Assembly (NCBI GenBank): GCA_025594325.1
Contig: JANHCV010000015.1
Span: 434,001 to 498,000 of the forward strand
Direction of reading: 5' to 3'
Source: Blastocladiella emersonii ATCC 22665
Lineage: Eukaryota; Fungi; Blastocladiomycota
DNA: 64,000 nt
Part shown: piece by piece, positions 26,870-46,590 of the stretch
Layout: the number at the start of each line of letters is the position of its first letter
Numbering within the stretch: position 1 is the first letter of the stretch
The notes under the pieces: model-generated
Database searches by the model: none
What the model was told of the DNA's origin: nothing
What the model saw: only the letters and a program-made list of their open reading frames with translations
Program-made: the position numbers and the translations under genes

Positions 26870-27079
26870 ATAGACCGTGTTGCACGTTGCGAAGCTCATC
26901 AGACGCGTGGTGAGTAGACTCGAGCTCGCGACCACGGAAGGAAGGTCGGCACGTCTGCATGGATCATGTCGCACGTGAGCGGCGCGACGCGTCTCGCATG
27001 CCATGTATCGCATCCTTTATCGTTCAATCAAGGCTCGCTTCTTCTCTTCGACCTCGACAATGTCGGGCATGGAGCTAAA

Positions 27080-28809
27080 ATGAACTCCATGCAACCATTT
27101 ATACCACGGATCGTCAACCCGTTGCCGGTGGACGCGCAGCGCCAGGTCGCGTCGTACCTTGGAATCTGTGACGCGGCCGCACTTCGCGCAACCTGTCGCG
27201 CGGTCTACGACTCCGATCTTTGGACAGACGGCCCCCATTTTCGGCGGTTCCTTGCGCTCGTCTCGGGCGACCTGTCCAAGTTTCTCGCACACGTGCCGCC
27301 CTTCTGCGGCCCGCGCCGCAAGCCGAGTCGTGGCGAGCGCAACGGCAAGAGCTGCCACGATCTCTTCTACTTCTGCCTCCCCCAGCCGCCGTTCAAGCAC
27401 GGTATTTTTCTCGTGGTCCATGTCTTCGTTCGCATGGGACACACCGACTGCACCGCCTTGCTGAGACGAGTGATGTACAGCGGATATCGCGCTCATGCCA
27501 GTCGCATGAATCCTGGCCTCGCCGACCCGATGAGCATTCTTGTTCAGTTCGAGCTTTCGCGCGTCATTGACGTGCTCTTGGAGCTCCCTCGCCAAGCTCG
27601 TGCGGATCCCGCTGACTCGTCCGGCGTGATCAACAAGATTCTTCAAACTCTCATGTCCCAGATTCTCAACGACGGCGGGATGCTTCCGCTCGCTCGGTTC
27701 GTGGTCGATCTTGCTATTCTCGCCCACCGCGGCGACTCGTCAACTTACGACGGGTCGAGCGTGGCCGTCTACCTTCCCGACGGGATTGCACCGGTTCGAG
27801 CGCGTGTCGAGGCGCAGCTTCGCCGAGACCACCGTGGCCGTGCCAAAGATCTGGTCGGACTCGACGCTCTCATCGACCTCATCTGAGTCTTCGTCCTTGA
27901 CGGCAGTATTTTCGCTCCACCGTGGTCCGAATTCGTCCAGTTCGGCTCCCGACCAAAGTCGTTCGAGTTCATTCAAGAAGCCATCGCGCAAGCTCGAATG
28001 TACCAGCCGAACCGCTTCATTATGCAATCGCTTTCCGACGCGCTCGTCCACACGCTCCGCGGATGCAGCGTGGCCAACTATCCGCGCCTCGCGGTGTACT
28101 GCCCAGCGGCGTTCTGCCTCGAGCCCGGTATCCATTCGCTGCCCGACACTTGGACGCTCCGCGCGGACTCGGGTCCAGACGACGAGTGGTGCGAACTCCA
28201 GTTGGCTTTCGTCACGGCGTTCCAGGAAGCGGCGCGCCGCGTGCCCAAGATAGCGGAGCGCACGGCCGAGTGGTGGGAGTGGCGCGTCGCGCCGGAGTAC
28301 CGCAACGTGTTGCAGGCTCTCATTGACGCTGAGTATCCCGGCTCGCCTCGTATTCAGGAGTTTGACTCTGCACGTAAAGTTGGGAGCGTAGCGTACATTC
28401 CTCCGAAAGCGACCACGTCCCGCAGCTCGCGCAAAAGCGGACCGCGGCACACCAAACCCTCATTGACTGCGGCTTCAGTCGAGCCCACGCCGTGGTTCGC
28501 GGTCACTGACGAGCCGGTGGATATCTCGCCGATCGTGGTCAACGGGCTCGGCCTTCAGATGCTTGCCGTAATCGTGCAGTACACGAACAACGCGAGCGAC
28601 GCCAAGTGGCTCGCCGAGTCGATCACTACTCTGCGCGGCCACTCGTGGCGGATGTCGCCCGAAATCGTGGATCAGATCCTCGCCGCGCCGTGGGCGGTCG
28701 AGCAAAGTGAAGGACTCGCGGCGTATTTCGAGGGTGCGCGGAGAGCGGCGTCCTGTGCGATCCGGCGTCTTGTGCCAAGGTTTATGCGTGGCTCAATGAC
28801 TTTTCTTAA
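27080..28809 (+). pseudogene. F-box-like family copy 3 with internal deletion, in-frame TGA (27884-27886) and a 3' frameshift
   Basis: MNSMQPFIPRIVNPLPVDAQRQVASYLGICDAAALRATC; a long segment is missing relative to copy 2. ORFs 26966-27886 and 27998-28945 are in one frame across a single TGA. A shift near 28740 restores a copy-2-like end. Confidence 0.8.
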
Positions 28810-29008
28810 ATATATGCCTTCTGTCCGTCTAGTGTTGCGAGCCATCAGGTGTGAGTATCGCAGAGACTCGGCGTGGAGCGTGATCGTGAGGCTCAACGGC
28901 ACGTGGGTGTGGCGCCGCCTCCCGCGGAGATATTTTGCCTCCTGATCGCAGTCCAAACTCGCCCACCCCGTCGTCCCTTGCGCTCTCTCTCCGACCCCAC
29001 TCCCAGCG

Positions 29009-30820
29009 ATGAAGCGAATGGATAACACTTCCGGCAAAGGCTTGCCGAGTCCTTCCGAGACCCCGCCAACGCTTTTGCCAGCCGCGGGTCGACAAATTTC
29101 TTCTCGTCCACCTGTCGCCCCGCCGGCCGGTCCAGTTCAGCACCAGTACTATATGATGCCGGCTCAACCCGCAGTCGCCTACTACCAACCGCAGCTTTTT
29201 CCGACCACGCTGTCCCAGTACCCTTCTGGCTACTTGCAGCCTGCTGTGCAGCAACAGCAGCCGCCGCAACATCCGCCTGCGCACCCCGACTTTGGCGACG
29301 TAGCACACCTTCGCACCCGGAACGCCGCACTCGAGCTCGAGTTGAAGGTGCTTCGCGCCGAGCACGATAAGCTCGTGGCGGACCGAGCACAGGAGCAGCA
29401 AACCGTCACCGAATCGCTCGCACAGCATGCTTCGCGACTCGACCAGCTCCGGAACCAAGTAACCTCCGCGCGCGCCGAGCGCGACGAGGTCGCCGACGCG
29501 CTTGCTGCGGCCAATTCGGTGCTCGAGGACACGGACGTCGAATGCAAGCGGCTCGCATCGGAACTTAGCGAGACCCGGACCGCGCTCGAGCAGGCGCGCG
29601 CCGAGTACGCCGTGCTTGCCCGCCACCGTGAGGACGCCGTTTTGCGCTGCACCGTCCTCGAGGCGCAGCTTACCGAATCCGCCGCGAAGCTCGCTCAGCT
29701 TCTTCTTGACGCCAAGGAACGGTTTGCCGAAGCCGCACCTGCTTCTAGCGTGGACGATGAAGCCGAGTTGGTACGGCTGGGCGCGGATTACCATCGCACG
29801 GCCAAGTGCCTTGCTATCGCCGAGTCCAAGGCCGCCGGCCTTGCCTTCGAGCTTGCTTCCGCGACCAAGGCTCTCGAACACGCGACGAAATCCTCGGCCG
29901 AGCTTTCCACGAAATGCGATTCCCTTCTCGCTCGAGCGCTTTCCGCCGAGCAGGCGCACAGCAAGCTTGCCAAGGAACTCGACGATGCCAAACTCCAACT
30001 CGAGGGGTCGAATGCCCAGCTTACCAAGGAACTTGACGATGCCAAACGCCAACTCGAGGCGTCTAGTGCGCAGCTTGCCAAGGAACTTGACGATGCCAAA
30101 CGCCAGCTCGAGGGGGCAAATGCCCAGCTCGCCCAGCTCGCTCAAGTCCAGCAGGAGCTGGACGCGACCGCCATGGAAAACAGCCGCCTCGTTGTCCAGC
30201 TTGCCGACATCAACTCCGAGCTTGGTCAACAGCGGACCGACATCGCCAGTCTTGTGGACCAGCTCGAGGAGGCCCAGACGCTCGCCGAGGTGCACCTCGC
30301 AGCCCGCAATGGCGCCGAGTTGGAGCTCGAGCAGGAGCGCACCGAGCACGCCGAGACGACGCGTCGCCTCGCTTTGATTCAGCGCCGCTTGGAGACTGCC
30401 ACCGCGAACCAGGCGGCTGACCCGGGCTCCGCAGCTTCCACGGCGGAGCCGGGACCTGCTTCGGCCTCAACTTCACAGCGCCCGCTTGCTGCTGAATCGC
30501 TGCCGCCACAGCCTTCTTCTCAGTCGCAGCCCGCCAGCAGGCGCCGGGCCTTCGAGAGCGACAACGATGTGCACTTCAGCAGCAGCGACGACGAGGTTGT
30601 AGTCAAGCGCCCGCGATACTCAAACGAGTACCTGGTTAGAACAATCTGTGATGCCCAGCCTGCGGACGACGGCAAGGTCAGGTACCACGTCCTGCGCCAC
30701 GGCTACAAGAACCGCGTCTGGAAGTCGTATGAAGAACTCCTCGCCGCCAACCCCAGGAATGCGGACCTTATCGCCGAGTTCCACGCCCAGAACCCGGACG
30801 TGCCCGATCCCCGCGAGTAG
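29009..30820 (+). CDS. Coiled-coil protein with C-terminal atypical chromodomain, copy 1
   Basis: P/Q-rich N-terminus, long heptad region, KRPR, then EYLVRTICDAQ...VRYHVLRHGYKNRVWKSYEEL...EFHAQNPDVPDP. The family-homologous start is the second ATG (29018, MDNTS). Confidence 0.8.
   Translation: MKRMDNTSGKGLPSPSETPPTLLPAAGRQISSRPPVAPPAGPVQHQYYMMPAQPAVAYYQPQLFPTTLSQYPSGYLQPAVQQQQPPQHPPAHPDFGDVAHLRTRNAALELELKVLRAEHDKLVADRAQEQQTVTESLAQHASRLDQLRNQVTSARAERDEVADALAAANSVLEDTDVECKRLASELSETRTALEQARAEYAVLARHREDAVLRCTVLEAQLTESAAKLAQLLLDAKERFAEAAPASSVDDEAELVRLGADYHRTAKCLAIAESKAAGLAFELASATKALEHATKSSAELSTKCDSLLARALSAEQAHSKLAKELDDAKLQLEGSNAQLTKELDDAKRQLEASSAQLAKELDDAKRQLEGANAQLAQLAQVQQELDATAMENSRLVVQLADINSELGQQRTDIASLVDQLEEAQTLAEVHLAARNGAELELEQERTEHAETTRRLALIQRRLETATANQAADPGSAASTAEPGPASASTSQRPLAAESLPPQPSSQSQPASRRRAFESDNDVHFSSSDDEVVVKRPRYSNEYLVRTICDAQPADDGKVRYHVLRHGYKNRVWKSYEELLAANPRNADLIAEFHAQNPDVPDPRE
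29972..30133 (+). repeat. 3 x 54-bp (18-aa) coding tandem repeat KELDDAK(L/R)QLExxxAQL(T/A)
   Basis: caaggaact(c/t)gacgatgccaaa occurs three times at 54-nt spacing; paralogs carry one unit. Confidence 0.9.
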
Positions 30821-31170
30821 CGCTCGTTTTTGACGGTGCTGAGTGTATGATACATGACTTTTCTTATTCGCATGACTGGTCGATCGGTTGAAGTTGTGAG
30901 CGGTGTGTTGACCTCGTCGTCGTCCTTTCGTCGATCAGTCGAACTTGTGAGCAGTGTGTTGACCTCGTCGTCCTTTCGCCTCGGACTTGGCGCGAGACGA
31001 ACATGACCATCGCGTGAGCGTTCTGCAGCACGCCATTCCCGGCTGACACAGAGTGTGGCTTGGCGGCAGATCAGCCACCAGCTTGAACGACCGCCGCGAC
31101 GGCTGCCGCTCCCTCGTCAGCCTGAGAACCACGAAGCGAATGGATTTAACCCCTGGCTACTAGTTGCATT

Positions 31171-32892
31171 ATGTCCGCCGGATTGCCTTCAGCGCAGACG
31201 TCCGATGCTCAGCGTGTTGCGGATGCGGCCCAATATCGACCTGACGGCCAGCCAACGTCGCAGGCTCAGTATCGCCCGCTTCCTCCGCGGCCCACCACCT
31301 CGCTTGTGCCTTCCCACTTCGACCATCCGGTAACAAACAACAGCTGCGCACCGGCGTATGAACAACAGCAGCGGAACCCTCCCCCCTCAACTCCGGAAAC
31401 GCCTTCGACCCAGACCACTGACGCCCGATTCGACTATTCTTCACTTGGCGGACTATCGCAGATTCTTGCACGAAATGCTGCCCTCGAGCGGGTCGTCACA
31501 ACGCTTACGGCCGAGCGCGACACCTTGCTGGCCGAGCGCGCTAGAATGCAAAAAGCTTGGCGGCAGTGCGAGGAGTCGTACGCTGCCCAGTACGCTTCGT
31601 TACACCTCCATCATGCTGCCGAATCCAAAAAGTGCCAAGCTTACGCGAAGCAGCTGGATGCTGCTCACGCTACAACTGCGCAGGCCAACCACCACGTTGC
31701 GCGCTTGCAGTCGGAGATCGAGCGAACTCGAGCGGAGCGCGACGAGGTGACCGAGCATCTTACCCTTTCCAACAAGCTGCTCGAGGATGCCGAATGCGAA
31801 AAACAGCGCCTTTTGGCCGAGCTCGACGAGTGTCGCGCGGCTCTCGAACGCGCGAGCGCGGACCAGGCTGCGCTTGCCCAGGAGCGCGACGATGCTGTCG
31901 CTCGCTGCGCGCGCGTCGAACCACGGGCTCCAGATTCCGCGGCTCTTCTTGAACTTGCGCGCGTCAAGCACGACATCACCCCTCAGCGGATTTCCACGGC
32001 CAAGCAACGAATTGGTGAATTGATGGCGCAGCTCGACGATGCCCGCTCACACCTCTCGAACCTCTCGCTGCAACTCGACTCGGCCAACGCTCGCGCCGAC
32101 GAGGCTGAGCGGAAGGCCCAGGCCCTTGCCGCCGAGCTTGTTAGGTTCACCGTGGCGCGCGAGCGTGTGTTTTCCGCGCAAGATACGCCGGCCGAGAAAA
32201 TCGATCCCGCATCTACCCAAGCAACTTATGCTGAGCAGGTGGGCAGCGATCCTGTCTCACAGCTTCACGACCACTGCGAGGAGCCCGAGAAAACCCGTTC
32301 CGCGCAGCCTTTGACCATGCGCACGGATAACACCTTGCTCGCGAACCAACGCCAAATTACGCATATGCGCGCTGTGCATGAACAGCAGCGCTCCACACGC
32401 TTCGAATCGGCCAACCAACGCGCTTCAGCGGAGCGGCTTTCGCCGTCGTACCCGCCCACCACTTCCGCTTTGGAGCCCGCTCTCCCCACGACGCCGCTCT
32501 GCACTTTGTTGCCCGTTCCCGCCGCGGCACCGAGCTTGCCGCTAGAATCTGCCGCCGCCGCTCCTGCTTCCTCGGCTGCTCACAGCCGTCATTTGGGTGG
32601 TGACTTGCGCTCTCAATTGAATCCCCTTCACGAACGTCCTGAGTCTGGCGATGGCGGTCGCGTGGCGAAGTTGTTGCGGACCAAACGAGGCATCTATTTC
32701 GTCGAGAAAATCTTTGACTCTCGGCACGCTCGCGACGGATCAGTCGAGTACCTAGTCCAGCGGTGGGGCTTTCAGAGGAAGAACTGGAAGTCGTTCGACG
32801 AGCTTGTTGCCGTCGACCCCGATCACCTCAAAATCATTACCAAGTTTCACGCCGAGCACCCGTTCAAGCCGGATCCGCGTCGATTGTCATGA
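31171..32892 (+). CDS. Coiled-coil + chromodomain protein, copy 2
   Basis: YFVEKIFDSRHARDGSVEYLVQRWGFQRKNWKSFDEL...KFHAEHPFKPDP. The family-type start context (acgaagcgaATGGAT, 31140) runs into a stop, so ATG 31171 may be a rescue start. Confidence 0.75.
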   Translation: MSAGLPSAQTSDAQRVADAAQYRPDGQPTSQAQYRPLPPRPTTSLVPSHFDHPVTNNSCAPAYEQQQRNPPPSTPETPSTQTTDARFDYSSLGGLSQILARNAALERVVTTLTAERDTLLAERARMQKAWRQCEESYAAQYASLHLHHAAESKKCQAYAKQLDAAHATTAQANHHVARLQSEIERTRAERDEVTEHLTLSNKLLEDAECEKQRLLAELDECRAALERASADQAALAQERDDAVARCARVEPRAPDSAALLELARVKHDITPQRISTAKQRIGELMAQLDDARSHLSNLSLQLDSANARADEAERKAQALAAELVRFTVARERVFSAQDTPAEKIDPASTQATYAEQVGSDPVSQLHDHCEEPEKTRSAQPLTMRTDNTLLANQRQITHMRAVHEQQRSTRFESANQRASAERLSPSYPPTTSALEPALPTTPLCTLLPVPAAAPSLPLESAAAAPASSAAHSRHLGGDLRSQLNPLHERPESGDGGRVAKLLRTKRGIYFVEKIFDSRHARDGSVEYLVQRWGFQRKNWKSFDELVAVDPDHLKIITKFHAEHPFKPDPRRLS

Positions 32893-33251
32893 TCTTACAC
32901 TGGCACAATAGATCAATTGCTTCTTCTAGCCATGAATTGTGCGAGGCGAACTTTTTGCCGTCCCGATAACGAGTACGTTGCGGTGAGTGAAAATCGTCGC
33001 GAACGCGCGTTGCGCTTGCGTTCTGCGCACCAACGAGCGCTCAGGGAGAGCTACCAGCGTGCGGGAAGCAAGCGCGATGTCGAGTGAGGGATCATGCACA
33101 GTGCCTTGGGAGACATTCCAAGCACGCGTCAGCGGAGACGAGTCGCGACTTGTGCAGCACGTGCACGTGGCGATTGCTCGAATCGGGGTCATCCTCTCAG
33201 CGCGCGCGCACCACCGCTCTCGCCCATCACCTAACGCTGGACACGAAACTA

Positions 33252-34913
33252 ATGGATCAGACTTCTTGCAACAATGCCACTCCGGGTCCACGGGCAGCCG
33301 ATTTGGCGGGCTCAAGAGTGTCGACCACGGCTGTCGGGACCGTTCCCGGCGCTCACCTGGCCGTTCCGACACTTCAGCCTCAGCATCGCTCAGCGTCGCC
33401 GTGGTCCGCGGACTTGTCTTCACAGGTGTCACCGCCTGTGCCGCCTCAATTTCAACACTCAATGAATATCTTCCAGCAACTTCAGGTCCTGCCCTCGTAT
33501 ACTGTTCTACGCGATACTATGCTTCCTCGCGACGCATCACATCTCTCCTCTGTCAACTCGCTGCTTGTGCGCGAGGTGGGGGCCCTGCGGGCGGAGCGCG
33601 ACGCACTTTTGTTGGAGCGCACTCGAGACCAGGCGCGCGCGTTGGACGCGCATCGCGATCTCGAGCGACTTCGAAGTCAACTGATTGCCGTGCGCACGGA
33701 ACGTGACGATCTGGTCAACGCACTTGCTGCAGCCAAACTCCTTCTCAATGGGACCGACGACCGATGCAATCAACTCACGGCGAAACTTTGCCAATCACGG
33801 ACCGCGCTCGAAGCTGCTCATACGGACCGCTCTCATCTCGAATCGAAGCTCGCCGAGGCGTACTCGGACCGCGGTCAGGCGATTCAGCGCATGCATGCCG
33901 CTGAAAAGCAGATCGCCGAGCTCGCTAAACATCTCGGTGGTCCCGGCGTCGTCGAACTTCTTATTGCACGCCGAGTCGAGCCACTTGATTCTCATCTCGA
34001 AGACAATGCTCACTTGGCGCGTCTGCGGTCTGACGCGGCCCACCACAAGACTGCGGAATGCCTCGCGATCTCCGAGTCCAAGGCGGCAGCCCTTGCCGTC
34101 GAGTTAGCTGCTGTTTACAACGTGTATAAGCAGGCGACGACTGCTGTGGCCAAGCTCGCCGCGCAACGCAACCGCTGCTTGGATCGCAGGGCGTCTGCCG
34201 AACACTCACTCAGCAATCTCACCAAGGAACTTGACGCTGCCAAGCGCCAGCTCGAGCCGCCCAGCGCGCAACTCGCGCAATCACAGCAGGAGTTGGGTTC
34301 CATGGATAACAGCTACCTCATCACGCAACTAGCCAGCAACGGCTTACATTTTGCTCAGCAACAGGACGACTACTCCAGCTTTGCCGGGCAGCTCGGGGAA
34401 ACCCAGTTGCGCGACAGCGCGATGTGCTTGTTGGCTGGCCAGCGCATCGATTCGGAGCTCACCCAAGACTACATCCCGCACGTCTCGACGACTCTTCCGC
34501 TCGCTTTTCTCTCGCACATTCAGCCCAGCGCTGGAGCAAATACCGCTCACGTTGCTGATTTGGGTCTGAACGCTTATGATGGCCCACTGCTCGCTCCCAC
34601 CGCGCAGCCTCACCCGATCCCGTCTACATTGCAGTTGCAATCACACTTGCCGAGCAAGCGTTCTGCAGCCGAGACTTACAGTCGCACCGGCGCCTTCGCT
34701 CTGCGCGCCAAGCGTGCTCGATCCGAGGTCATCGATCAAATATTTGACGCGCGGCGAATCCATGGAACTGTCGAGTACCTCGTTCTGCGGAGCGGTTACA
34801 AACAGCGGACATGGAAGTTATACGAGGAGCTCAAGGGCGTCAACCAAAAGCACCTCGTTCTCATCGCTGACTTTCACGCTCAAAACCCGCACAAGCCTGA
34901 CCCGAGGACGTAG
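33252..34913 (+). CDS. Coiled-coil + chromodomain protein, copy 3
   Basis: Start acgaaactaATG (MDQTS); ends IDQIFDARRIHGTVEYLVLRSGYKQRTWKLYEEL...DFHAQNPHKPDP. Confidence 0.8.
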   Translation: MDQTSCNNATPGPRAADLAGSRVSTTAVGTVPGAHLAVPTLQPQHRSASPWSADLSSQVSPPVPPQFQHSMNIFQQLQVLPSYTVLRDTMLPRDASHLSSVNSLLVREVGALRAERDALLLERTRDQARALDAHRDLERLRSQLIAVRTERDDLVNALAAAKLLLNGTDDRCNQLTAKLCQSRTALEAAHTDRSHLESKLAEAYSDRGQAIQRMHAAEKQIAELAKHLGGPGVVELLIARRVEPLDSHLEDNAHLARLRSDAAHHKTAECLAISESKAAALAVELAAVYNVYKQATTAVAKLAAQRNRCLDRRASAEHSLSNLTKELDAAKRQLEPPSAQLAQSQQELGSMDNSYLITQLASNGLHFAQQQDDYSSFAGQLGETQLRDSAMCLLAGQRIDSELTQDYIPHVSTTLPLAFLSHIQPSAGANTAHVADLGLNAYDGPLLAPTAQPHPIPSTLQLQSHLPSKRSAAETYSRTGAFALRAKRARSEVIDQIFDARRIHGTVEYLVLRSGYKQRTWKLYEELKGVNQKHLVLIADFHAQNPHKPDPRT

Positions 34914-35509
34914 CTGGGGCCAAGCTGTCGTGAGCTGCGCAATATACATCTGACTCGTTTGCCAATCCAGCTAGCCAACCAATCGAAATGGTTGTCCGTG
35001 GCCCGGCCGGATGATTGTGCAGGTCCTGCGAGGGGAACGTGGCTCGCACCTTCGGACGACTTGAAGCGACGCGTTGCAAGATCGCGTGCCATATCAGAGG
35101 ACCTTCGTGTCTGGCACCGTCCACTGAACTCGTAGGCGTCGGCCCCGTTTATTGCAGGCATCAGAGCTAGGTTTCACGCCATAAGATCGGCGAGACGACT
35201 TCTCGCTGCCCAGCTGGTGAGAGACTCGCGGTGGGAGTTGCTGGGCCTAGACACGCGTCATGCGTTTGCCCTGGGCACCGCAGATGCTAGCGATAAACGA
35301 TCAACTCAAGAGAAGCAAGCACGCTGTCATGCGTGATGCCTCGCGCTTACATCCCGAGCCATCGACGCGACGCGATGAAACGCGCCGCACGTGCTGTGGC
35401 GCAGCATCAGATCGGGTGACTCCTCTCTCGCGGCCAGGGGTCATTCTCGTCCCTGGCGCGCTTGCTCTCTCTCTCTCCCGCTCCGAAACTAGAGCTATAA
35501 ACGAAACCA

Positions 35510-36874
35510 ATGAACCAGACTTCTTGCATACGGACGCCGACGGACTCAGCGGCACAAGCCGCTTCCCCCAGGACGCGTGGCTTCGCACTCCCTCGCCCCT
35601 CGAGCCCTCAGCCGATCAAACAGTCGCAGCTTCAGTCTCACGAGGCGTCGACGAGACCCGCGGACTCAACTTCCAAGTCGCAACTTCCTCCATCCATGGT
35701 TGCTCAACCTTGCGAATCGATGCATGTCCTCCAGCAACTGCGATTGTTACCCTCGTCCAGCGTGTTTGACGATGCAGCAGAGCTCCCCCTAAACGATTCT
35801 AACCTTGTGCTTGAGCTGGATCTCCTTCGTACGGAACGCGACGCACTCTTGGCGGAGCGCACGCGGAACCAGGGCCGTGCTTTGGATGTACAGCGGGATC
35901 TCGAGCAGCTTCGGAACCAGGTGACTTCTGCGCGCGCGGAACGGGACGAGGTCGCGGATGCTCTTTCTGCTTCGAATCAGCTTCTCGAGGAGTCCAACGT
36001 CCGTTACGACAGACTTGCAGCGGAACTCGGCAAATTGCGTACCGCGCTTGACGATACTCGCGCCGAACGTGCCATTCTGGTTCAAGCTCGCGACGATGCT
36101 GTCACAGCTCACTCTCAACTCGAGTCCCAGCTCTCCGACTCGGCGACGGAGCTTGCAAAGGCGACATATTGTATCGCACGCAGCTCGCGCAAACTCAGCA
36201 GGAGCTCGGCTCGATTTTCCATGGAAAATAAGCGTCTCTCCGCGCAGCTCGCCAACAACACGCAGCTCGTCAACAAAAACTTGCAGGTCTCTTATCCACA
36301 CGTTTACCAGTCCAGCTTGGCCGAACAGCTCAAAGGGGCTCAGTTGCTCCGCGCGATGCACCAGTCGGCTCACCGGCACTTGGAGCCTGAGCTTGCCCAG
36401 AAAAGTGTCTCGCACGTTCGGATAGCGCCTCGACCCGATCCGCAGCAACGCACTCCGCCCAACGTTGGTGGGAGCACCGGCTACGTTACTGACTCGGGAA
36501 TCGACGTGTTTGGTTTCCCGGCGCTTGCTCCCGCCACGCAACCCTACTCCGCCTTGTCTCAGCCGCCCCTGTACTCGCAGCTGTCCAAAAAACGTTTAGT
36601 GTCCCAGCGCGCTTCCAATGCGGCTTCAAGTCCCGATGTTCCGCGCAGTACGCACGGCAAGCGTAGCCGATACAAGACACCAGGTTATCTCGTGGAACAC
36701 ATCTTTGGCGCACGTCTACTCGGTGATACGGTCGAGTACTACGTTTTGCGGTGTGGGCACCGAAATCGGGCGTGGAAGTCGTTCGAGGAGCTCAAGTACG
36801 TCAACGCGAAGCACCTCGATTTGATCGCTGCGTTCCACGCCCGGAATCCCGGCAAACCTGTTCCACGCATGTAG
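35510..36874 (+). CDS. Coiled-coil + chromodomain protein, copy 4 (shortened coiled coil)
   Basis: MNQTS start; ends YLVEHIFGARLLGDTVEYYVLRCGHRNRAWKSFEEL...AFHARNPGKPVP. Confidence 0.8.
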   Translation: MNQTSCIRTPTDSAAQAASPRTRGFALPRPSSPQPIKQSQLQSHEASTRPADSTSKSQLPPSMVAQPCESMHVLQQLRLLPSSSVFDDAAELPLNDSNLVLELDLLRTERDALLAERTRNQGRALDVQRDLEQLRNQVTSARAERDEVADALSASNQLLEESNVRYDRLAAELGKLRTALDDTRAERAILVQARDDAVTAHSQLESQLSDSATELAKATYCIARSSRKLSRSSARFSMENKRLSAQLANNTQLVNKNLQVSYPHVYQSSLAEQLKGAQLLRAMHQSAHRHLEPELAQKSVSHVRIAPRPDPQQRTPPNVGGSTGYVTDSGIDVFGFPALAPATQPYSALSQPPLYSQLSKKRLVSQRASNAASSPDVPRSTHGKRSRYKTPGYLVEHIFGARLLGDTVEYYVLRCGHRNRAWKSFEELKYVNAKHLDLIAAFHARNPGKPVPRM

Positions 36875-37167
36875 ATAACGCAAAGCTGTTGCGATTTGCA
36901 TCATGCACTATCGGTCCATCAGTCCATCAAATCTCGTTGTTTGATAGGGAATACGATTGATGTCGTGGGTGATGGCGCGGACTCGTGAGCAAGGCTTGGC
37001 GTTCGGTTCAGGCGAAAAAAAACGCGACGTGTGTGTGGGAGACATTCCGTGCACGCGATCGACGCGTCGCGACGCGTGGCACGTGGAGGTGGTCAAGGAA
37101 TTTGCTCTCGTCCGTGGCGCGCACGCATGCCCCTCTTGCTCTGAACCTAAACCTAGAAACGAAACTA

Positions 37168-38800
37168 ATGAATCAGACTTCTTGCAAACAAATGCCAGGT
37201 CCTCCGGCAGCGCACTCCGCTGGTTGTCTCTATTCCGGCGCTCAGCAGGTTGCTCCGTCACTTCATCCTCAGTACCCTCCCGCGCCGACGTGGCCCGCCG
37301 ACTTCACTTCGTCGTCGCAGGTCCCGCCACGCATGTTGCCTCAATACTACACTTCAATGCGTGTTATCCAGCACCTGCGGTCGCTACCCCCGTCCACCGT
37401 CTTCAGCAATCCAACCCAGATTCCAGCAGGCAATTTCTCACTCGAGCGCGATCTGGAGCTTCTTCGGGCGGAACGCAACGTGCTGTTGGCGGAGCGCGCG
37501 CGAGACCAGGCGCGCGCCTTGGACGCGCATCGCGAACTCGAACAACTTCGCAGCCAGCTCGCCGCTGCACGGACGGAGCGTGATGAGGTGGCCGACGTGC
37601 TTGCTACGACAAATCTGCTTCTCGAGGAGGCCGACGCCCGATCCAATCAACTCGCGATGGAACTTTCCGAGTCACGGACCGCGCTGGACGACTCTCGCGC
37701 TGAACGTAACAAACTCGCTCAAGCTCGCGACGATGCTGTCAATGCTCGCTCTTATCTCGAAGCCCAGCTTGCCGACTCGACCGCGGCACTTGCTCGGGCA
37801 TACTCGGACCGCAGCCAGGCACTCCAGCGCATGCATTCCGCGGAAAAGCAGATTTCCGAGCTTGCGGTACAACTCTGCGGTCCTGGCGCCGCCAAACTTC
37901 TCAATACGCGCCGATTCGAGCCGACCCATTCCCCTCTCGAAGAGAGCGTTCACTTGGCGTGCCTACGGTCTGACGCCGACCACCACAGGACCGCAGACTG
38001 TCTCGCTATCTCGGCGACCAAGGCCGCTGCTCTTGCGGCTGAGCTCGCTTCTGTGAACAATTTGTATGAGCGTGCGACTATTGCTGCGGTTGATCTTACC
38101 ACGCAACGCGACCACTACTTGACTTGCACACTTGCTGCCGAACACTCACTCAGCAATCTCACCCAGGAGCTTGACGATGCCAAACGCAAGCTCAAGTCGT
38201 CGAACGCGCAGCTCGCGCAAACGCAACAAGAACTGGACTCAGTCATCAAAGGGAATAGAGGTATTGTCGCTCAGCTCGCCACCAAGGACTCGCAGCTTTC
38301 TCAGCAACAGCTCGACCACGCCAGCTTGGTTGGTCAGCTTGAACAAGCCCAGACGCGCGTCGCGATGCATCTCGCGGCCCAACAGCGTGCTGAAACTGAT
38401 CTCGCCCAGGAGCGCGCTGTGCACGCCGAGACGACGCGCTGGATTGCCTTGCTTCAGGACCGCTAGTCGAGCGCTAGTACGGACGCCAATACCGCGGCTG
38501 ACTCGGGCCTGGACAGCTCTGCGACACCCGAACCTACTCCCGTCATGCATTCTCAGCCCATCAAGTCCTTGCCGGTGCAATCGCGTCCGCCAAGGAAGCG
38601 CCCTGCAGTCGAGTGCAACTCTAGTGTGGCTTCTAGCGCTGCCGGATCCTCCGCTCCGCGTGTCAAGCGCACTCGAATCGTGGTCATCGGTCCAAGCAAC
38701 GGACGTGGAAGTGCTACGAGGAGCTCAAGTGCGCGAATCTGAGGCATCCCGACCTCTTCGCCGATTTTCACGCTTGAAACCCCGACAAACCTGATCCGCG
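37168..38800 (+). pseudogene. Coiled-coil family copy 5: TAG at 38464-38466, chromodomain half-deleted
   Basis: Homology continues past the stop. A shifted frame gives KQRTWKCYEELKCANLRHPDLFADFHA*NPDKPDP, while the front half of the chromodomain is missing. Confidence 0.75.
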
Positions 38801-39092
38801 TACACAGAGAGATGGGGACACACTGCCGTGACTTGCGCCATACATATCCGACTCGTTTGCAAATGAACCTCGCCTCGCACGCACACGGCCCGAACGAGTG
38901 GACAGGATCTGAGCGGGATGTGGCGCGCACGTTCGGGCGACACGAGGCGACGCGTCGCGATATCACGCGAAAATCAGACCACACACGTGGCGCCGCCCCG
39001 CTCGGCGCTCCGCCAGGGGGACTTGGCTCCGCTCGCTCAACGAGGCGCAAGCGACACCTTGCGCTCCCTCGGGCAACCAACCAACGAAGCTA

Positions 39093-41006
39093 ATGGATAT
39101 GACTTTTGGCAACGTTCAGCCAGGACTTGCTGCATCGTTTTTGGTGGCGGAAGCAGCGCCGCTCCCTGGTCTTCCGGCGCCGACCGATGCTCTTCTCCAG
39201 GGCGAGCAAAACCGTGCACACGCGCAGCGGCCGGTTTCGCTTCAACCGTGTGACCAGCCTCATTTGGACCCGCATGCGCTGCGCTTGCGTGCGGGCTTAA
39301 CTGCCGCGGACGAACGACTTGCCGCCCAGGAGGGCGTAGCGAACGCGCTTCGGACCGAACGCGACCAGCTTGGCACCGAACTTGCCGAAGCGCGCCGACG
39401 CGTGCGCGAGCTTCAAGCTGCCCATGCGGCTGAGCTCACAGCTGTCTGGGCGCAGCGCGACACGGCCGTTCGCGAGCGGAATGACGCCGTTGCATCGGCC
39501 GAGGACCTCGGCGCCGACCTTCGTATCGCCAAAATCAAGCTTACAGCGGCCGACGAGCTCCGTGAAGTCGCCGAGAACCGCGTCTCGCGACTCAAGGGCG
39601 AGCTCGACAGTTTTCGGAGCCAGCCAGCTGCGGCCTTACCCTGCCCTGCTTCGCTTACGGACGAGCTCTCTGCTACAAAACGAGACCTTGCGCAGGCTAC
39701 GGCGAAGCTTCACGCGGCCGAGACTCGTGCTGCCTCGCTTTCCGCCGAGCTCGACGCGACCCAGCTTGCTCTCACGCAGTCTCGCGACGATCACGCCAAG
39801 GTTTCCGCTTTGCTCTCTACCGCCGAGGATAGCATCGCCCACCTTACGGTGCAGGTCGACGAACTGACCGCGAACCGCGACGACCTTGCGGACCGGCTTG
39901 CTTCAGCCGAATCCCGCCTCTCTCAGTTGCCTCTGGAGCACGATGCGGAACTACGCCGGCTTGCGGGCGACCACACAAAGACCTCCAAGCTACTTTCCAT
40001 CGCCGACGGTAAGATTACCAGCTTTACGATGCAAATTGACAAACTGTCGACGGACCGCGACAGTCTCACTGAGCGGCTTGCCTTGTCCGAATCCAAACAC
40101 TCTCAGCTGATCCCCGAGCACGACGCGACGCTGCGGCAACTTGCTCAAGCCGAGTCCATGGCTCACGTTTCGGCCGCCGAACTCGCGACCGTCAAGGCGG
40201 CCCACAAGTCAACGCGAATTGCATTGGTCGAGTCCACGACGCGGATCGGCGAGCTTACGTCCCGCTCGCTTGCTGCAGAACAGTCGACTGCAAAGCTTGC
40301 CAAACAGCTTAATGAAACTAAATCCGCCACTCCCAACCAGGATTCGCGTATTGCGGGCTTGACGATGGAGCTTAGCCAGACTCGCTCAAAGCTTCGCATT
40401 GAATCCGAGGCGTGCGCGCTTTTCAGCGAGAAATACGAACGTGCTTCAGCTGATCTCAAGGAATCTCGAGGCGCGATCGCCCAGCTCCGTCGCGAAAACG
40501 AGCAGCTTTCTCTTTGACGCATCACGCTCTCGGAGCAGGGCATCCGCGCCCCGCATCTTCCGGACGAGGCAGTTGCACGCTGGGCTAGCGTGGACCCGAC
40601 CACGGCGATCCGCCGGTACCCGCTCTCTGAGCCGCTTCAAGCTCTTTTGGACAACGTGCGCGCTTCCGCCTTCCAAATGCTCAAGTACGTTGAGCAAGGC
40701 AAGGTCCCGCTTCCGGAAGCGATTCGCGGCGCCTGGTCGGCTGTCCGCGTTCAAATCGACGCGGCGTTCGTCGAGCGAGAGCGCGCCCATCTTGACAGCT
40801 GCCTCGTGCTCCTCAAGGAGGCGGAAAACAGGTGTCACAACCTTGCGATATGCGGCCAGGCTCGTTTGGCTCGTACCCTCGCCGACCAAGCCGCCGCTAA
40901 GGCTGGTGATCAGGTTAACGCGTCAGCAAGCGCTGTTGCGGCTTCTCAAGCGCAGCTGGACACGAGCGACCCGCGCCAGTCCAAGCGACGCCGGACTGAC
41001 GCATAG
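39093..41006 (+). pseudogene. Coiled-coil family copy 6 (subtype B, non-chromo C-terminus) with in-frame TGA at 40515-40517
   Basis: ORFs 39093-40517 and 40590-41006 are in the same frame, and the C-terminal domain aligns with copies 8 and 9. Contains a 60-aa internal duplication. Could still encode a truncated 474-aa protein. Confidence 0.7.
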
Positions 41007-41358
41007 GTCCCGAGTCAGATCTTGCGTCGTTCTCTCGTGCATTTCGCTAATATCATTGTTTTTTGTTCCAATCTGATCGTTTTTTTTTTGCACTTTCTCA
41101 GTTGGTGGTCGATGGTACACTCTTAGCGGCGGAGAGTGCGATGTGCGGGTCGATGAGCTCTCCAAGTGACCCGATGTGCGCTTGAACTTCGCAACGAGCG
41201 GGGCGTGTGCGCTCGCGGCGAGCAGTGGGACGCGTCGCGATATCACGCCATGATTCAGGAAAACACGTGCGTGGAGTCACCCCCAGATTTCTCAATACAT
41301 GCGCCACAGGCTGCGAGCCCGCGCTTGCTCTCTAGAGCACACAAAAACAACGAAACTA

Positions 41359-41745
41359 ATGGATCCGACTTCCAGCAACGTTGAGCCGGAACCCGGTGCA
41401 GCGTTGTCATTCCTGGACCAGGCCGTGACGACTGAAGCTGAGCTCCAGGGCGACCCGCAACCTGCTTTCTTGCATCATCCACTTTCCGTTCTTCCACTCG
41501 CTTAACTTCACCATGACCCAAACATGCTCCCCTCGCGCGAAGGCTTGTCCGCAGCAGACGCACGACTTGCTGCCAAAGAGCGCGTGGTGCTTGTTCTCCG
41601 GACCGAACGCGACCAGCTTGGTGATGAACTTACCCAAGCACGACAGCGGATCCGGGAGCTTCAATCTTCTCACGCAACCGAGCTCGCCGCCGTCTGGGCC
41701 CAACGCGACACCGCTGTCCGCGAGCGCAATGACGCCGTCGCATAG
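41359..41745 (+). pseudogene. Coiled-coil family copy 7, truncated 5' fragment
   Basis: aacgaaactaATG (MDPTS), TAA at 41503 where the paralog has CAA, a frameshift, then LRTERDQLGDEL...RNDAVA*; no further homology. Confidence 0.8.
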
Positions 41746-42167
41746 CTCGCAGCCCAAAGCGGCCCCGGACGGGACCATAGGTCCTGAAGCAATCAACTCA
41801 TAAATTTTATCATCATGTTTGCACATTCTTACCTTTTTCTTCACATGACATCCGCAAGCGAGAAGAACGCGTCAGTGTCGCGTGTCTCGCGCTAGGCGTG
41901 TCCTGAACATCATTTCACAACGCGTATTGTTGGGACCGGTCAGTGCTGGGCCCCGAGCTCGGCTTGTAGGAGAACCCGCGTTGTCGTTTTGTTTCCGTTT
42001 CTGTGCGCACTGCTGTCAACGCTGCGTTCGCGGTGTGCGATGGGACGTGTCGCGATATCACGCGGGTAATCAGGTGCGTGGCGCCGCCTCGCCCTGCTTC
42101 ACACACGACAGCACGGGCGCAAGCACAACGTTCCTTCACTCGCTCACTCCACCAAACAACGAAGCTA

Positions 42168-43991
42168 ATGGATCCGACTTCCGGCAACGTCCAGCCGGGA
42201 CACGGGGCCGCCTTGTTGCTTGCGGCGGCGGGGCTGCTGCCCGATCAAATGGCGGCACCCGAAGCTCAACCCCAGGGCGGGCCGCAGCCTGCTGCTCCCT
42301 TACATCAAGCAGCTTCAATTCTTCCGCTCGCCCAACCTCAGCTTGAGCCGGACGCGCTTCGCTTGCGTAAGGATCTGTCCGATGCGAACCGTCGACTCGC
42401 CGTCCAAGAGCGCATGACGGATGCGCTTCGAACCGAATGCGATCAACTCGGCGCCGAGCTTAGCGAATCGCGGCGACACTTGCGAGAGCTTCGAACCTCG
42501 CATGCGGCCGAGCTTGCCACTATCTGTGCCCAACGCGACGCCGCCGTACGCGAACGCGATGCCGCTATTCGCGAACTCGACGACGCAATCGCATCGGCAG
42601 AAGACCTCGGTACCCAGTTTCGCATAACCAACATCAAGCTCGCTGGCGCCGACGAGATTCGCCAACTTGCCGATACTCGCGCTTCTCGGCTCAAGGACGA
42701 GCTGGACAGAGCTCGGAACCAGCCATCTACGGCTACCCCCGATCTCACCAACGAGCTTGCTGCCGCACAGCAACAACTCGCTCAGGCCACAACGATGCTT
42801 CACGCGGTCGAGACTCGCGCTGCCACGCTCGCCGCCGAGCTCAATGCGACCCAGCTTGCCCTCACGCAGTCTCGGGACAACCACGCCAAGGCTTCGGACT
42901 TGCTCTCGACCGCCGAGGACAACATCGCCAGTTTTACAACGCAAGTCAACGAACTGACTGCGAACCGCAACGAGCTTGCGGAACGACTTGCTTCAACCGA
43001 ATCCAGGCTTTCTCAGCTGCTCCCGGAGCACGATGCGACGCTGCGCCAGCTTGCACAAACCAAGTTCACGGCTCAATCTTCGGCCGCCGAACTCGCAGCC
43101 GTCAAGGCGGCACACGATGCCGCGCTTCGCACGCTGGCTGATTCCAATGCGCGGATCGACGAACTTACCTCTTGCTTGCTTGCATCCAAGCAATCGACCG
43201 CAAAGCTTACCAGCCAGCTCAATGCCGCCGAATCCGACGCACTCAAGCGGACTACGCGCATTACAGACTTGCAGTCCGAGCTTGACCAGACCCGCGAGCA
43301 GTGTCGCTTACAGACTGCTCAGGTCGCAGAACTGCGAGGAAAGTACGAAATTGCGCTTGCCGAGCGCGCCGCACTTAACGCGGATCATTCAGAAGCAGCG
43401 CAGCGGATTCATCTTCTTCAACAGGAAAACGAGCGGCTTACCGAAGCGATGGAGCTCGGTATTCCCTATCTGGTTAGCACCAACGAAGACTTGGCAGACT
43501 GGGCTGGTGTTGATTCGAGCGTCGTCATCCAAAAGTATCCACTTGGGGAGCCGCTTCAGACGGTTCTGGACAAAGTACGCCAGATGGGACGCAGATTCTT
43601 CGCGCAAATCGAAGTGGGTAAACTTGCTCAACCATGCGCGATTCGCGGCGACTGGTCGGAAGTTGATTGGGAACTTGATCCGGAGTGGGACGAGCGCGAG
43701 CACATTCATCGTCATAACTGCGTTGCGTACCTCAACAAGGCGTTTTCCGAATGCTTTCATCTTGTCAAGTTCGCAACTGCACGCAATGCTCTTTTACTGC
43801 GCGATGGAACCCTGGCGAAAGAGAAGGGTGGACCGGAGGCGCCCACGACCGCGGTAACGGCTCAAGAAGCGCCGTTGGACGTGGATGAGGAGCCTTTGGT
43901 CGTGGCGGAGTCGTTGGTCGCGGAGGAGGCGTCGGTCGTGGAAGAGCCCGAAGGCCTGCGCCGCCCAAAGCGACGCCGGACGGCAGAGTAG
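42168..43991 (+). CDS. Coiled-coil family copy 8 (subtype B), intact
   Basis: aacgaagctaATG (MDPTSGNVQPG), long heptads, WAGVD...YPL...IRGDWS domain, terminal NLS-like RRPKRRRT. Confidence 0.8.
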   Translation: MDPTSGNVQPGHGAALLLAAAGLLPDQMAAPEAQPQGGPQPAAPLHQAASILPLAQPQLEPDALRLRKDLSDANRRLAVQERMTDALRTECDQLGAELSESRRHLRELRTSHAAELATICAQRDAAVRERDAAIRELDDAIASAEDLGTQFRITNIKLAGADEIRQLADTRASRLKDELDRARNQPSTATPDLTNELAAAQQQLAQATTMLHAVETRAATLAAELNATQLALTQSRDNHAKASDLLSTAEDNIASFTTQVNELTANRNELAERLASTESRLSQLLPEHDATLRQLAQTKFTAQSSAAELAAVKAAHDAALRTLADSNARIDELTSCLLASKQSTAKLTSQLNAAESDALKRTTRITDLQSELDQTREQCRLQTAQVAELRGKYEIALAERAALNADHSEAAQRIHLLQQENERLTEAMELGIPYLVSTNEDLADWAGVDSSVVIQKYPLGEPLQTVLDKVRQMGRRFFAQIEVGKLAQPCAIRGDWSEVDWELDPEWDEREHIHRHNCVAYLNKAFSECFHLVKFATARNALLLRDGTLAKEKGGPEAPTTAVTAQEAPLDVDEEPLVVAESLVAEEASVVEEPEGLRRPKRRRTAE

Positions 43992-44010
43992 TTTTCAAAC
44001 ATAAATAACT

Positions 44011-44330
44011 TGTTTTGTATTGTTCAACGTTTATCTACATTTATCTATTCGAAGAAACGCGTCAGTGTCTCATGTCTCTCGCGCTCATCGTGACCCGAAA
44101 CGTGATTTCGAGACGCATGCCAAGCTGCTCAGTGTCAGCGACCGAGCCCCCTTTCGCGTTCAAGTGCAATCGCCGAATCGATGTAGTTACTCGTAACTGG
44201 CAACTGCGAGCTCATGTTGCGAACAAAAATTGGGAAGCAAAATTGATGATGTTTCTTGATACGCTCCTGGTATACAACACACATTTTCTACCACACGTCG
44301 GTGCTTTCTTTCCGTTCTTCCCCTCAATAC
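44011..44330. repeat. Degenerate copy of the 46301-46630 intergenic region, including the last codons of the ABC-F gene
   Basis: Shared aaacgcgt(c/g)agtgtctcatgtctctcgcg...gtgatttcg...gcgaccgagccc...gcaaaa(t/c)tgatgatg blocks. The minus strand reads EGKNGKKAPTCG vs EKKGKKAPARG in ABC-F. Confidence 0.75.
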
Positions 44331-44499
44331 CGCCGACGGTCCGTTCGCGGTGAGCGAGGAGACGCGTCGCAATATCACGCCGCTCGTCAGGAGACCTCGT
44401 GAGTGGCGCCGCCTCGCCATTTTCGTTCTCGCAACAGACAGCATCAGTCGCCGTGCTCGCGCATCCTCCGCTCGCTCGCTTGACCAAACAACGAAGCTA

Positions 44500-46278
44500 A
44501 TGGATCAGACTTCCGGCAACGTCCAGCCGGGACCCAATGCAACGCTGCCGCCGCTCGCGGCAGCACAGCTCGCTGGTCACGCGGCGGCGGCCGAAGCGCA
44601 AATCGCGGGCGAGCCGCGACCTGCTTCACTTCTACCGCTTTCCCAACCTCGACTGGACGCGAATACGCTCCGGTTGCGTGGCGACTTGTTGGACGCGAAT
44701 CAGCGACTTGCCGCCAAAGAGCGCATCGCGGTCGTCCTCCGCACAGAGTGCGACCAGCTTGGCAACGAGCTCGCCGAAGCGCGGCGGCGAGTGCGTGAGC
44801 TCCAAGATGCCCATGCGACCGAGCTTGCCGCCGTTCGCGCCCAACTCGGCTCCGCGATCCGCGAACGTAACGACGCGACCGCATCAACCGAGGACCTCGG
44901 CACCCAGCTTCGCATCGCCAACGTCAAGCTCGCCGCTTCTGACGAACTTCATGAGCTTGCCGATACTCGCGCCTCTCGACTCAAGACGGAGCTGGACAGG
45001 GTTCGGAACCATACGCTTACACCTGCTCCCGAGATTGCTTCTCTTACGAACGAGCTTGCTGTCGCGCAACAACAGCTGGCGCAGGCCACGACGAAGCTCG
45101 AAGCGGCCGAAACTCGTGCTGCCACGCTTGCCGCCGAGCTCGATACGACTCAGCTTGCTCTCACGCAGTCTCGCGACGACCAGGCCAAGGTTTCCGCTTT
45201 GCTCTCGACCGCCGAGGGCGACATCGCCAGCTTGACGACGCAAGTCGACGAGATGACCGCGAACCGCGACGATCTTGCGGAACGACTTGCTTTGTCCGAA
45301 TCGCGACTTTCTAAACTGACTCCGGAGCACGACGCGGCCCTGCGCAAGCTTGAGCAGGCCGAGTCTGCGGCGAACGCTTCAGCCGTCGAGCTTGCTGCCG
45401 TCAAGGCGGCGCACGATGCGACGCTTCGTACGCTGGCCGAATCCAAGGCGCGGGTCGACGAACTTACCTCTCCCTCAATTACATCTGAGCAATCGACAGC
45501 AAAGCTTACCGACCAGCTCAATGTTGCCGAATCGAGCTTGCTTACGCAGAACGCGCGTGTGACGGACTTGCAGACCGAGCTTGATCAGAATCGCGAGGAG
45601 TGTCGCTTGCAATCCGAACAGCTTGCAGAGCTTCAAGTCAAGCATGACACTGCTCTTGTTCAGCATGCGGCTGCCAAGGCCGAACATGGGGCAGCTGCAG
45701 CTGAGGTCCTTCGTCTCAAGTCGGAAATCTGGCGGCTTTCCGCTGCGATAGAACAAGGCGTCTGGTACCCAGAGTTTACCAATGAAACGATTGCGCGCTG
45801 GGCCGGCGTGGATCCGAGCACCGTGATTGAGAAACATCCGCTTTCTGCAGCGCTTCAAACTCTCTTGGTCAAGGTTCGGGTTTCCACGTTGCATATCTTT
45901 CGGTGTATCGAATCGGGGAAAATCCCGTACTCCGCTGCGATTCGTGGAGAGTGGTCCGCCGTCCGTGTTCAAATCGACACATCATTCGTTGAGCGGGAGA
46001 GCGCCCATCTTGCTCGCTGTTTGGAGCTCTTCAAGGAGGCAGACGCCGAAGCCCTTAAGCTCACCGATTGCGCCCGGGACCGGTTGGGTCGTATGCTCGC
46101 CGATGCTGCTGCAAAGGAAGCAGGTGATGCAGGCGCACCAGCAACCACGTCAGCACCCACACCATCAACCACGCCATCACCCGCCCCAACGACCACGCCC
46201 GCAGCGTCTGGGGCTCAACCGGCTCCAAGCGGGCCTGAAGGCCCTCGCCGCTCAAAGCGACGCCGGACGGGAGCATAG
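44500..46278 (+). CDS. Coiled-coil family copy 9 (subtype B), intact
   Basis: aacgaagctaATG (MDQTSGNVQPG), heptads, WAGVD...HPL...IRGEWS domain, terminal RRSKRRRT. Confidence 0.8.
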   Translation: MDQTSGNVQPGPNATLPPLAAAQLAGHAAAAEAQIAGEPRPASLLPLSQPRLDANTLRLRGDLLDANQRLAAKERIAVVLRTECDQLGNELAEARRRVRELQDAHATELAAVRAQLGSAIRERNDATASTEDLGTQLRIANVKLAASDELHELADTRASRLKTELDRVRNHTLTPAPEIASLTNELAVAQQQLAQATTKLEAAETRAATLAAELDTTQLALTQSRDDQAKVSALLSTAEGDIASLTTQVDEMTANRDDLAERLALSESRLSKLTPEHDAALRKLEQAESAANASAVELAAVKAAHDATLRTLAESKARVDELTSPSITSEQSTAKLTDQLNVAESSLLTQNARVTDLQTELDQNREECRLQSEQLAELQVKHDTALVQHAAAKAEHGAAAAEVLRLKSEIWRLSAAIEQGVWYPEFTNETIARWAGVDPSTVIEKHPLSAALQTLLVKVRVSTLHIFRCIESGKIPYSAAIRGEWSAVRVQIDTSFVERESAHLARCLELFKEADAEALKLTDCARDRLGRMLADAAAKEAGDAGAPATTSAPTPSTTPSPAPTTTPAASGAQPAPSGPEGPRRSKRRRTGA

Positions 46279-46590
46279 CTTCTGAACCAACTGTCTCATG
46301 TTTCTGTACTGTTCATTGCCTGATACACATTTAGTTGTCTCGTCTAACGTCCGTGAGCGAGGAAAACGCGTGAGTGTCTCATGTCTCTCGCGGTCAGCGT
46401 GACCTGAAACGTGATTTCGCGACGCGTCCCGAGCCGCTCGGTGCCAGCGACCGAGCCCATTTCGCGTTCACGCACAATTGCTGACCCGACGTAGTTGCTT
46501 GTCACCAGCGGCTGAAAACTCAAGTCGCGGACGATATTGGGGGAGCAAAACTGATGATGATTCTCTATACACGCTGCTAGCTCTACACCC

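Follow-up and report, generated by a model that had tools for sequence, protein, structure and literature searches.

Domestication of the gag, protease and integrase cores of retroelements is well known, and the fission-yeast CENP-B homologues and Gag-derived factors such as Fv1 are transposon-derived host proteins that police transposons. To our knowledge, the chromatin biology of the lineage to which Blastocladiella emersonii belongs is almost unexplored. Chromoviruses carry a C-terminal chromodomain across fungi, plants and vertebrates (PMC3350952). Here we describe an array of nine tandem loci in B. emersonii ATCC 22665, for which a genome of 21 contigs with an N50 of 2.02 Mb has been published (PMC9730499). 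The window, that is, the whole stretch of DNA analysed, comprises 64 000 nucleotides (positions 434001–498000 of contig C7 of the GC-rich genome, 32.65 Mb in 21 contigs), and the array occupies window positions 29009–46278. Judging from sequence comparison, the encoded proteins have one shared coiled-coil rod and either of two exchangeable C-terminal heads: the A head, a predicted chromodomain that we read as captured from the 3' end of a chromovirus pol gene, and the B head, a predicted helical domain without detected relatives. On balance, we favour the view that these are lineage-specific nuclear rod proteins whose C-terminal modules can be exchanged and which may act against the chromovirus or alongside it.

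The closest described domain is the integrase chromodomain of group I chromoviruses, for example that of MAGGY (PMC3350952). The A head has the same fold and shares a characteristic end, FHAxNPxKPDPR, with elements resident in this genome; unlike an integrase tail, it stands behind a coiled-coil rod, in a gene without retroelement parts. The chromodomain fold is also common to HP1/CBX proteins, Rhino and Oxpecker, and like Rhino and Oxpecker the family consists of fast-evolving paralogues. Unlike all of these, the A proteins lack a chromo-shadow domain, carry the chromodomain at the C-terminus together with a long rod, have an incomplete aromatic cage, score below the Pfam Chromo threshold and have, on our reading, a separate origin in a retroelement. 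The likeness to the CENP-B homologues and Fv1 would be one of origin, not of effect on the element: a mobile-element domain appears to have been reused in a cellular gene while the element is still active in the genome, but here the targeting domain alone was taken, fused to a rod and spread over about 10 paralogues. In the literature that we searched, no cellular rod protein or gene family with a captured chromovirus integrase chromodomain was described. The original prediction, made from the DNA letters alone, had likewise named no described family with this layout, and in agreement with it the protein, Atlas and literature searches were blank.

Organisation of the array

All nine loci lie on the plus strand, and the listing of open reading frames (ORFs) and their translations gave no sign of introns. 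Six loci are intact (copies 1–4 of A type, copies 8 and 9 of B type) and three are decayed (copies 5, 6 and 7). The A copies at 29.0–38.8 kb and the B copies at 39.1–46.3 kb form separate blocks, as had been predicted. The nine-member array also held up as nine same-strand loci, although with three of them broken, and it is part of a larger family: profile searches of the organism's own genome identified some 20 loci, the majority on C7.

Copy 1 (29018–30820, 600 amino acids) displays the A-type plan, with a P/Q-rich N-terminus, a rod at approximately residues 91–468, an S/P linker, the basic motif KRPR and the chromodomain. Copy 2 (31171–32892, 573 amino acids) is the most divergent copy inside the window, copy 3 (33252–34913) encodes 553 amino acids, and copy 4 (35510–36874, 454 amino acids) has a shortened rod. 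In the B block, copy 8 (42168–43991, 607 amino acids) consists of a rod, a helical head from about 43461, an acidic linker and a terminal KRRRT, and copy 9 (44500–46278, 592 amino acids) has its head, modelled as all-helical, at 45760–46140. The best reading of these genes, judged from their frames, is a lineage-specific, fast-turning-over protein-coding family.

One rod with two heads

The 150 bases upstream of the coding regions, including a CT-rich leader, can be aligned across the A and B types, and the first 10 codons are common to both. The sequence AACGAA(A/G)CTA stands directly 5' of ATG-GA(T/C)-nnn-ACT-TC in seven copies (copies 3–9) and is degenerate in copy 1; the prediction that all copies share this start context fails for copy 2, from which it is absent. 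The N-termini are P/Q-rich and of the predicted MDxTS type. Each copy then has a long proline-free rod with a/d patterning, covering 26–63% of residues as against 6–19% in shuffled sequences by our own crude heptad score, and an RxERDxL block, LR(A/T)ERDxL, is common to A and B rods, which bears out the coiled coil with LRxERDxL that had been noted. Protein identity is 31–59% within a type, and between types BLAST finds weak rod matches only. Comparison of the A and B rod profiles with hhalign gave a colinear match over 335 columns that starts at LR(A/T)ERDxL (99%, E 4e-18, 14% identity), a score that is inflated by coiled-coil composition; for this reason we rest the kinship of the two types on colinearity and on the shared 5' DNA. 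A gene elsewhere in the genome (L012:1613-3862) combines a B-like N-terminal rod with a chromodomain tail and is, as far as its sequence tells, a natural head swap. Based on the shared 5' DNA, the colinear rod profile and this chimera, the A and B types are most simply described as one rod with two exchangeable C-terminal heads. The modular family that had been proposed is thus retained, the homology across both types being upheld by the upstream alignment as well as by the rod comparison.

In copy 1, an 18-residue module (…KELDDAK.QLE…AQL) occurs three times in tandem at 29964–30129, the outer copies being 91% identical in DNA, and rod length therefore appears to change by duplication of whole modules.

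The rods matched only coiled-coil-type families in Pfam, with weak matches to Filament, Myosin_tail, ATG16, Cep57_CLD_2 and the crescentin rod. On B rods, Cep57_CLD_2 (28.3 bits) and ATG16 (35.8 bits) exceeded the family cut-off, yet we treated these hits as coiled-coil composition, not membership. The proteins resemble intermediate filament proteins and lamins in having a disordered N-terminal region, a long heptad rod and a tail with a nuclear localisation signal (NLS) and a globular domain, and in matching Pfam Filament weakly; they differ in scoring 19.6–25.5 bits against a cut-off of 40, and in having no intermediate filament consensus ends, no Ig-fold tail and no conservation outside this genome. 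These features bear on the explanation that the family is a structural nuclear or cytoskeletal scaffold (lamina-like, spindle-pole, synaptonemal or a nuclear-cap lattice) with no link to transposons, the chromodomain serving as a convenient chromatin anchor. The long heptad rods with their weak family matches speak for such a scaffold, as do the NLS-like basic clusters, the purifying selection and the promoter element, common to hundreds of ordinary genes, that are described below. A core structural protein is, as a rule, encoded by one conserved gene, whereas this family has no detectable relatives, many paralogues that are 30–60% identical and frequent pseudogenes, and its Pfam matches reflect coiled-coil composition. 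We therefore regard a purely structural role as unlikely.

The putative promoter element, the 17-mer GACGCGTCGCGATATCA, is found on the plus strand at 38949–38965, approximately 130–145 bp before the ATG of copy 6, and recurs with no or one change before copies 7 (41229–41245), 8 and 9, with a weaker relative before copies 4 and 5. Allowing at most one mismatch, it occurs at 165 + 134 places (about 300) in the genome, at least 87 of them exact, as against none for the reversed control. It contains ACGCGT and TCGCGA cores. The flanks were unique in 20 sampled loci, save for a few extra bases (…GA before the motif and YGTGA after it), which suggests that GACGCGTCGCGATATCA is a promoter or factor-binding element spread across the genome and not a repeat.

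The A head is a predicted chromodomain with an altered cage

None of the A tails in the window reached the threshold of Pfam Chromo PF00385 (25.1 bits), copy 2 scoring 13.6 bits and the others giving no match. The AlphaFold model of the A tail had a mean predicted local distance difference test score (pLDDT) of 82, with values above 90 in core residues 21–50, and comprised strands at 18–27, 30–37 and 43–47 and helices at 48–54 and 56–68, that is, a three-stranded antiparallel sheet followed by a C-terminal helix. All of the top 50 matches of the model in the PDB were chromo or chromo-shadow domains, led by Oxpecker, Rhino and then CBX1; with the best crystal structures, template modelling (TM) scores by target were mostly 0.7–0.8 and root-mean-square deviations 1.3–1.7 Å over about 55 residues. 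A profile built from the tails of the coiled-coil genes without Pol matched solely HP1/CBX/CDY chromodomains in the PDB (best E 1.1e-3), and addition of the Pol sequence described below improved the best value to 6e-8. On the strength of the model, the fold of the A head is that of a chromodomain.

The methyl-lysine aromatic cage is formed by Y24, W45 and Y48 in HP1 numbering (PMC3350952). In the six copies of the A clade defined below, the cage is not complete: five of six have Tyr at the first position, all six have Arg in place of W45, and the third position is Y, F, H or N. The Trp is kept in the resident Pol copies and in three further ORFs of this genome, small or linked to a rod (L005, L006 and L007). 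Apart from the cage, 19 positions are invariant across the six A-clade chromodomains. The head is preceded by basic NLS-like clusters (KRPR, KRAR or KRSR), and the basic clusters on their own suggest a nuclear location for both A and B proteins. The claim that copies 1–5 end in an NLS-like motif and a chromodomain was accurate for copies 1–4; in copy 5 the frame is closed by a TAG and the tail is shattered.

Chromovirus origin of the A head

When the tail of copy 4 was searched against the organism's own genome, it retrieved the other A copies and the C-termini of a multi-copy ORF of 1286 amino acids with 46–48% identity, and no HP1-like or CHD-type cellular chromodomain in the genome. It encodes a Ty3/gypsy Pol whose domains are RVT, RNase H, integrase zinc, integrase core, SH3_Tf2-1 and Chromo (2e-12, 47.3 bits). 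In the element at L001:1794-6910 (contig C11, minus strand), the long terminal repeats (LTRs) are 174 bp long and 100% identical, and no gap separates the pol stop codon from the 3' LTR. The identity of the LTRs together with the presence of the full 1286-residue frame in at least 15 copies indicates, from the sequence, that this chromovirus has been active recently. At least two more chromovirus families are present, among them one with Pol frames of 1340/1435 amino acids and one with a FYAAHPDKPRPP tail.

Alignment of the A tails with the Pol tail showed invariant I, Y, G and W and a terminal F-H-A-x-x-P-x-x-P-x-P-R, with the stop codon within a few codons in both. The extension FHAxNPxKPDPR-stop is common to three chromovirus families of the genome and was absent from the four chromodomains that are not of the chromovirus Pol type (one HP1-like, two CHD-type and one in a further ORF). 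At the DNA level, the last 70–95 nucleotides or so of the A genes match pol at 67–77%. With Pol C-termini as nearest kin and a shared extension ending the ORF, the A head belongs with the chromovirus-type integrase chromodomains. Among 17 chromodomains of this genome placed in a tree, the six A tails grouped as one clade (support 97/90), in keeping with a domain that was captured a single time and a gene that was then duplicated. We take the direction to have been from element to host gene, because chromoviruses carry the domain across such distant hosts. Our reading is thus that the A head was captured once from the 3' end of a chromovirus pol gene. This origin, the loss of the cage Trp and the decay of three loci had not been part of the original prediction. 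A word-index protein search with the Pol tail returned nothing from 17 candidates, a weak blank.

A retroelement-type chromodomain could also mean that these are not host genes but travel with a mobile element (a large transposon or a chromovirus-associated non-autonomous unit) as its cargo or accessory genes, and retroelements do lie near some members of the family, namely a reverse transcriptase (RT) ORF beside the L012 chimera and a chromovirus 18 kb from the copy on C19. However, no array copy has a gag, protease, RT, RNase H or integrase Pfam domain, no LTR, RT, integrase or gag was found within or beside the array, and similarity to pol is confined to the last 95–190 nucleotides or so of the A coding region, with none past the pol stop. 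The copies stand 25–35% apart in DNA, their flanks are duplicated in tandem and not dispersed with terminal repeats, and the promoter element is a genome-wide motif in unique contexts. Cargo genes are accordingly the explanation to which we give least credence, and we consider it very improbable.

Two short ORFs of 150–166 amino acids, L005:1837-2334 (plus strand) and L007 (C4:308775-309122, minus strand), encode a basic linker and a chromovirus-type chromodomain with an intact Trp. L005 retains the Pol linker PPP..INGEEEW. They may represent additional captures or else pieces of Pol.

An orphan B head with a predicted helical fold

The B head follows directly on the rod, is approximately 110 residues long and has the motifs ARWAGVDPxT, PLSxPLQ and AIRGxWS and a long Cys-containing helix. 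It is followed by a low-complexity stretch, and the protein ends in K/R-x-K-R-R-R-T. The head of about 110 residues plus KRRRT that had been assigned to copies 6, 8 and 9 is present as described in copies 8 and 9, and in copy 6 it is reached only through an in-frame TGA.

The model of the copy 9 head was all-helical (mean pLDDT 75). The head matched nothing in Pfam, and its profile had no match among 1.84 billion representative proteins in an exhaustive HMMER search. A profile search for a known domain, suggested with the original prediction, gave no significant match in the PDB (best E 0.15), and Foldseek gave E values above 3. In a wide VIA comparison only the long last helix was matched, to generic coiled coils at Z of about 6, and a second look gave Z 2.0 to the N-terminus of FadR. 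Against the Atlas, feature similarity was 0.79 and shape similarity reached a TM score of at most 0.44, with no credible relative. A word-index protein search was blank as well, a weak result confined to proteins 0.55–1.75 times the query length. As modelled, the B head is therefore an orphan helical domain, without a relative in the protein, PDB or Atlas collections searched. A helix-turn-helix identity, suggested by ARWAGVDPxT and by weak TetR-like and helix-turn-helix fold rows, was dropped as the scores did not support it.

Age, selection and turnover

Array copies differ by 25–35% in DNA (66–75% identity). Pairwise synonymous divergence (dS), estimated by the Nei-Gojobori method with our own script, was 0.7 to more than 2, and the ratio of non-synonymous to synonymous divergence (dN/dS) was 0.27–0.48 for whole genes, 0.20–0.58 in B heads and 0.24–0.54 in A tails; these ratios are rough, dS being near saturation. 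They indicate moderate purifying selection on what appear to be old duplicates. The 3' flank of copy 8 (43946–44262) matches that of copy 9 (46233–46570) at 73%, up to the end of a convergent ABC-F gene, and the duplication unit therefore included that intergenic DNA, which fits tandem unequal exchange.

Three loci record the loss of genes. Copy 5 (37168–38466, with tail remnants to about 38830) has a rod that is open up to a TAG at 38464–38466, and in its tail remnant (about 38693–38830) the frame is shifted, the N-terminal half of the chromodomain is missing and the terminal motif is interrupted by a stop (FHA-stop-NP). Copy 6 (39093–41006) has an in-frame TGA at 40515–40517 between rod and head; the head downstream of it (40575–41006) is still conserved, and an internal module of about 60 amino acids is present in duplicate in the rod. 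Copy 7 (41359–41745) is a B-type 5' fragment consisting of the promoter and 130 codons, with an internal stop at 41503–41505, no rod end and no head. The same breaks recur in contigs from three runs on this sample; two of the contigs span the stretch without any difference, and the breaks are therefore not errors of this one assembly.

Such decay raises the question of whether the family is largely functionless, the outcome of accidental tandem duplications and exon shuffling in a repeat-rich, accessory region, its copies being tolerated and slowly decaying. In addition to the three broken loci out of nine in the window, there are broken copies at C7:219306, C19:371229 (a TAG) and C7:578005; dN/dS is relatively high, at 0.3–0.5; and no homologue was found outside the genome in the searches run, the word-index protein search with the whole of copy 4 being a weak blank under the same length limits as that with the B head. 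However, the copies are old, and six nevertheless retain frames of 450–600 codons with conserved heads and promoters, the dN/dS of the heads is clearly below 1 (0.2–0.58), and the 19 invariant chromodomain positions persist across all six A-clade copies. We hold this explanation to be slightly less probable than a structural scaffold, itself unlikely, and prefer that of nuclear rod proteins with exchangeable heads.

Proposed role of the rod proteins

In the explanation that we favour, each protein starts with a disordered P/Q-rich N-terminus, continues with a rod of 200–400 residues and a low-complexity linker that contains a basic, NLS-like cluster, and ends in one of at least two swappable modules. 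The rods may form oligomers, which would each bear two or more heads inside the nucleus. Whatever chromatin feature or partner the integrase tail of the chromovirus uses would also be the destination of the A proteins. There they could serve as a scaffold, or else as decoys or guards, interfering with the sites at which the chromovirus integrates or marking them. That the A proteins may act at chromovirus target sites is suggested by where their head came from, by the activity of the element and by the way in which members of the family arise and decay. New genes, swapped heads and lost genes in the tandem arrays may all be traces of a conflict between host and chromovirus.

Several observations weigh against this explanation. 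The A and B rods are linked at only 14% identity by a composition-inflated profile score; the chromodomain tree is unresolved outside the A clade, which falls inside an unresolved group together with Pol domains; and comparison with the chromovirus DNA found no LTR or integrase remnant beside any A gene. With the cage Trp replaced by Arg, canonical HP1-like reading of methyl-lysine by the A clade is unlikely. The three broken loci would also fit a family drifting towards loss.

A bolder form of the proposal is that, in an early-diverging fungus, the chromatin-targeting tail of an active retrotransposon was made into a multigene host system, in which oligomeric rods with Trp-to-Arg decoy chromodomains, and rods with a wholly new head swapped in by recombination, together occupy or mark the landing sites of the element in an arms race; this we think doubtful, on a par with the structural scaffold. 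If A proteins do compete with or guide the integrase, they would represent a new kind of host–transposon interface. In any case, domains have been shuffled on a constant rod in this one genome, and the intermediates still survive.

Family members elsewhere in the genome

Upstream of the array, three ORFs (24875–28945; 664, 306 and 315 amino acids) had no Pfam match at E ≤ 0.001. A second cluster of family genes lies at C7:219-226 kb and consists of a fragment of an A gene, a complete A gene (432 amino acids), two unrelated genes and then a B gene (499 amino acids). Further B genes are located on C11 (655 amino acids) and on C19, the latter with a TAG stop. L006, on C4, encodes a short rod with a canonical-cage chromodomain that scores above the Pfam Chromo threshold (35.5 bits). 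On C18, an A gene of 717 amino acids adjoins a gene for a rod protein of 757 amino acids (L011:1415-3688, minus strand), and both genes are present twice. The 757-residue protein has a third kind of C-terminal helical tail, which aligns only weakly with the B head, at 13%.

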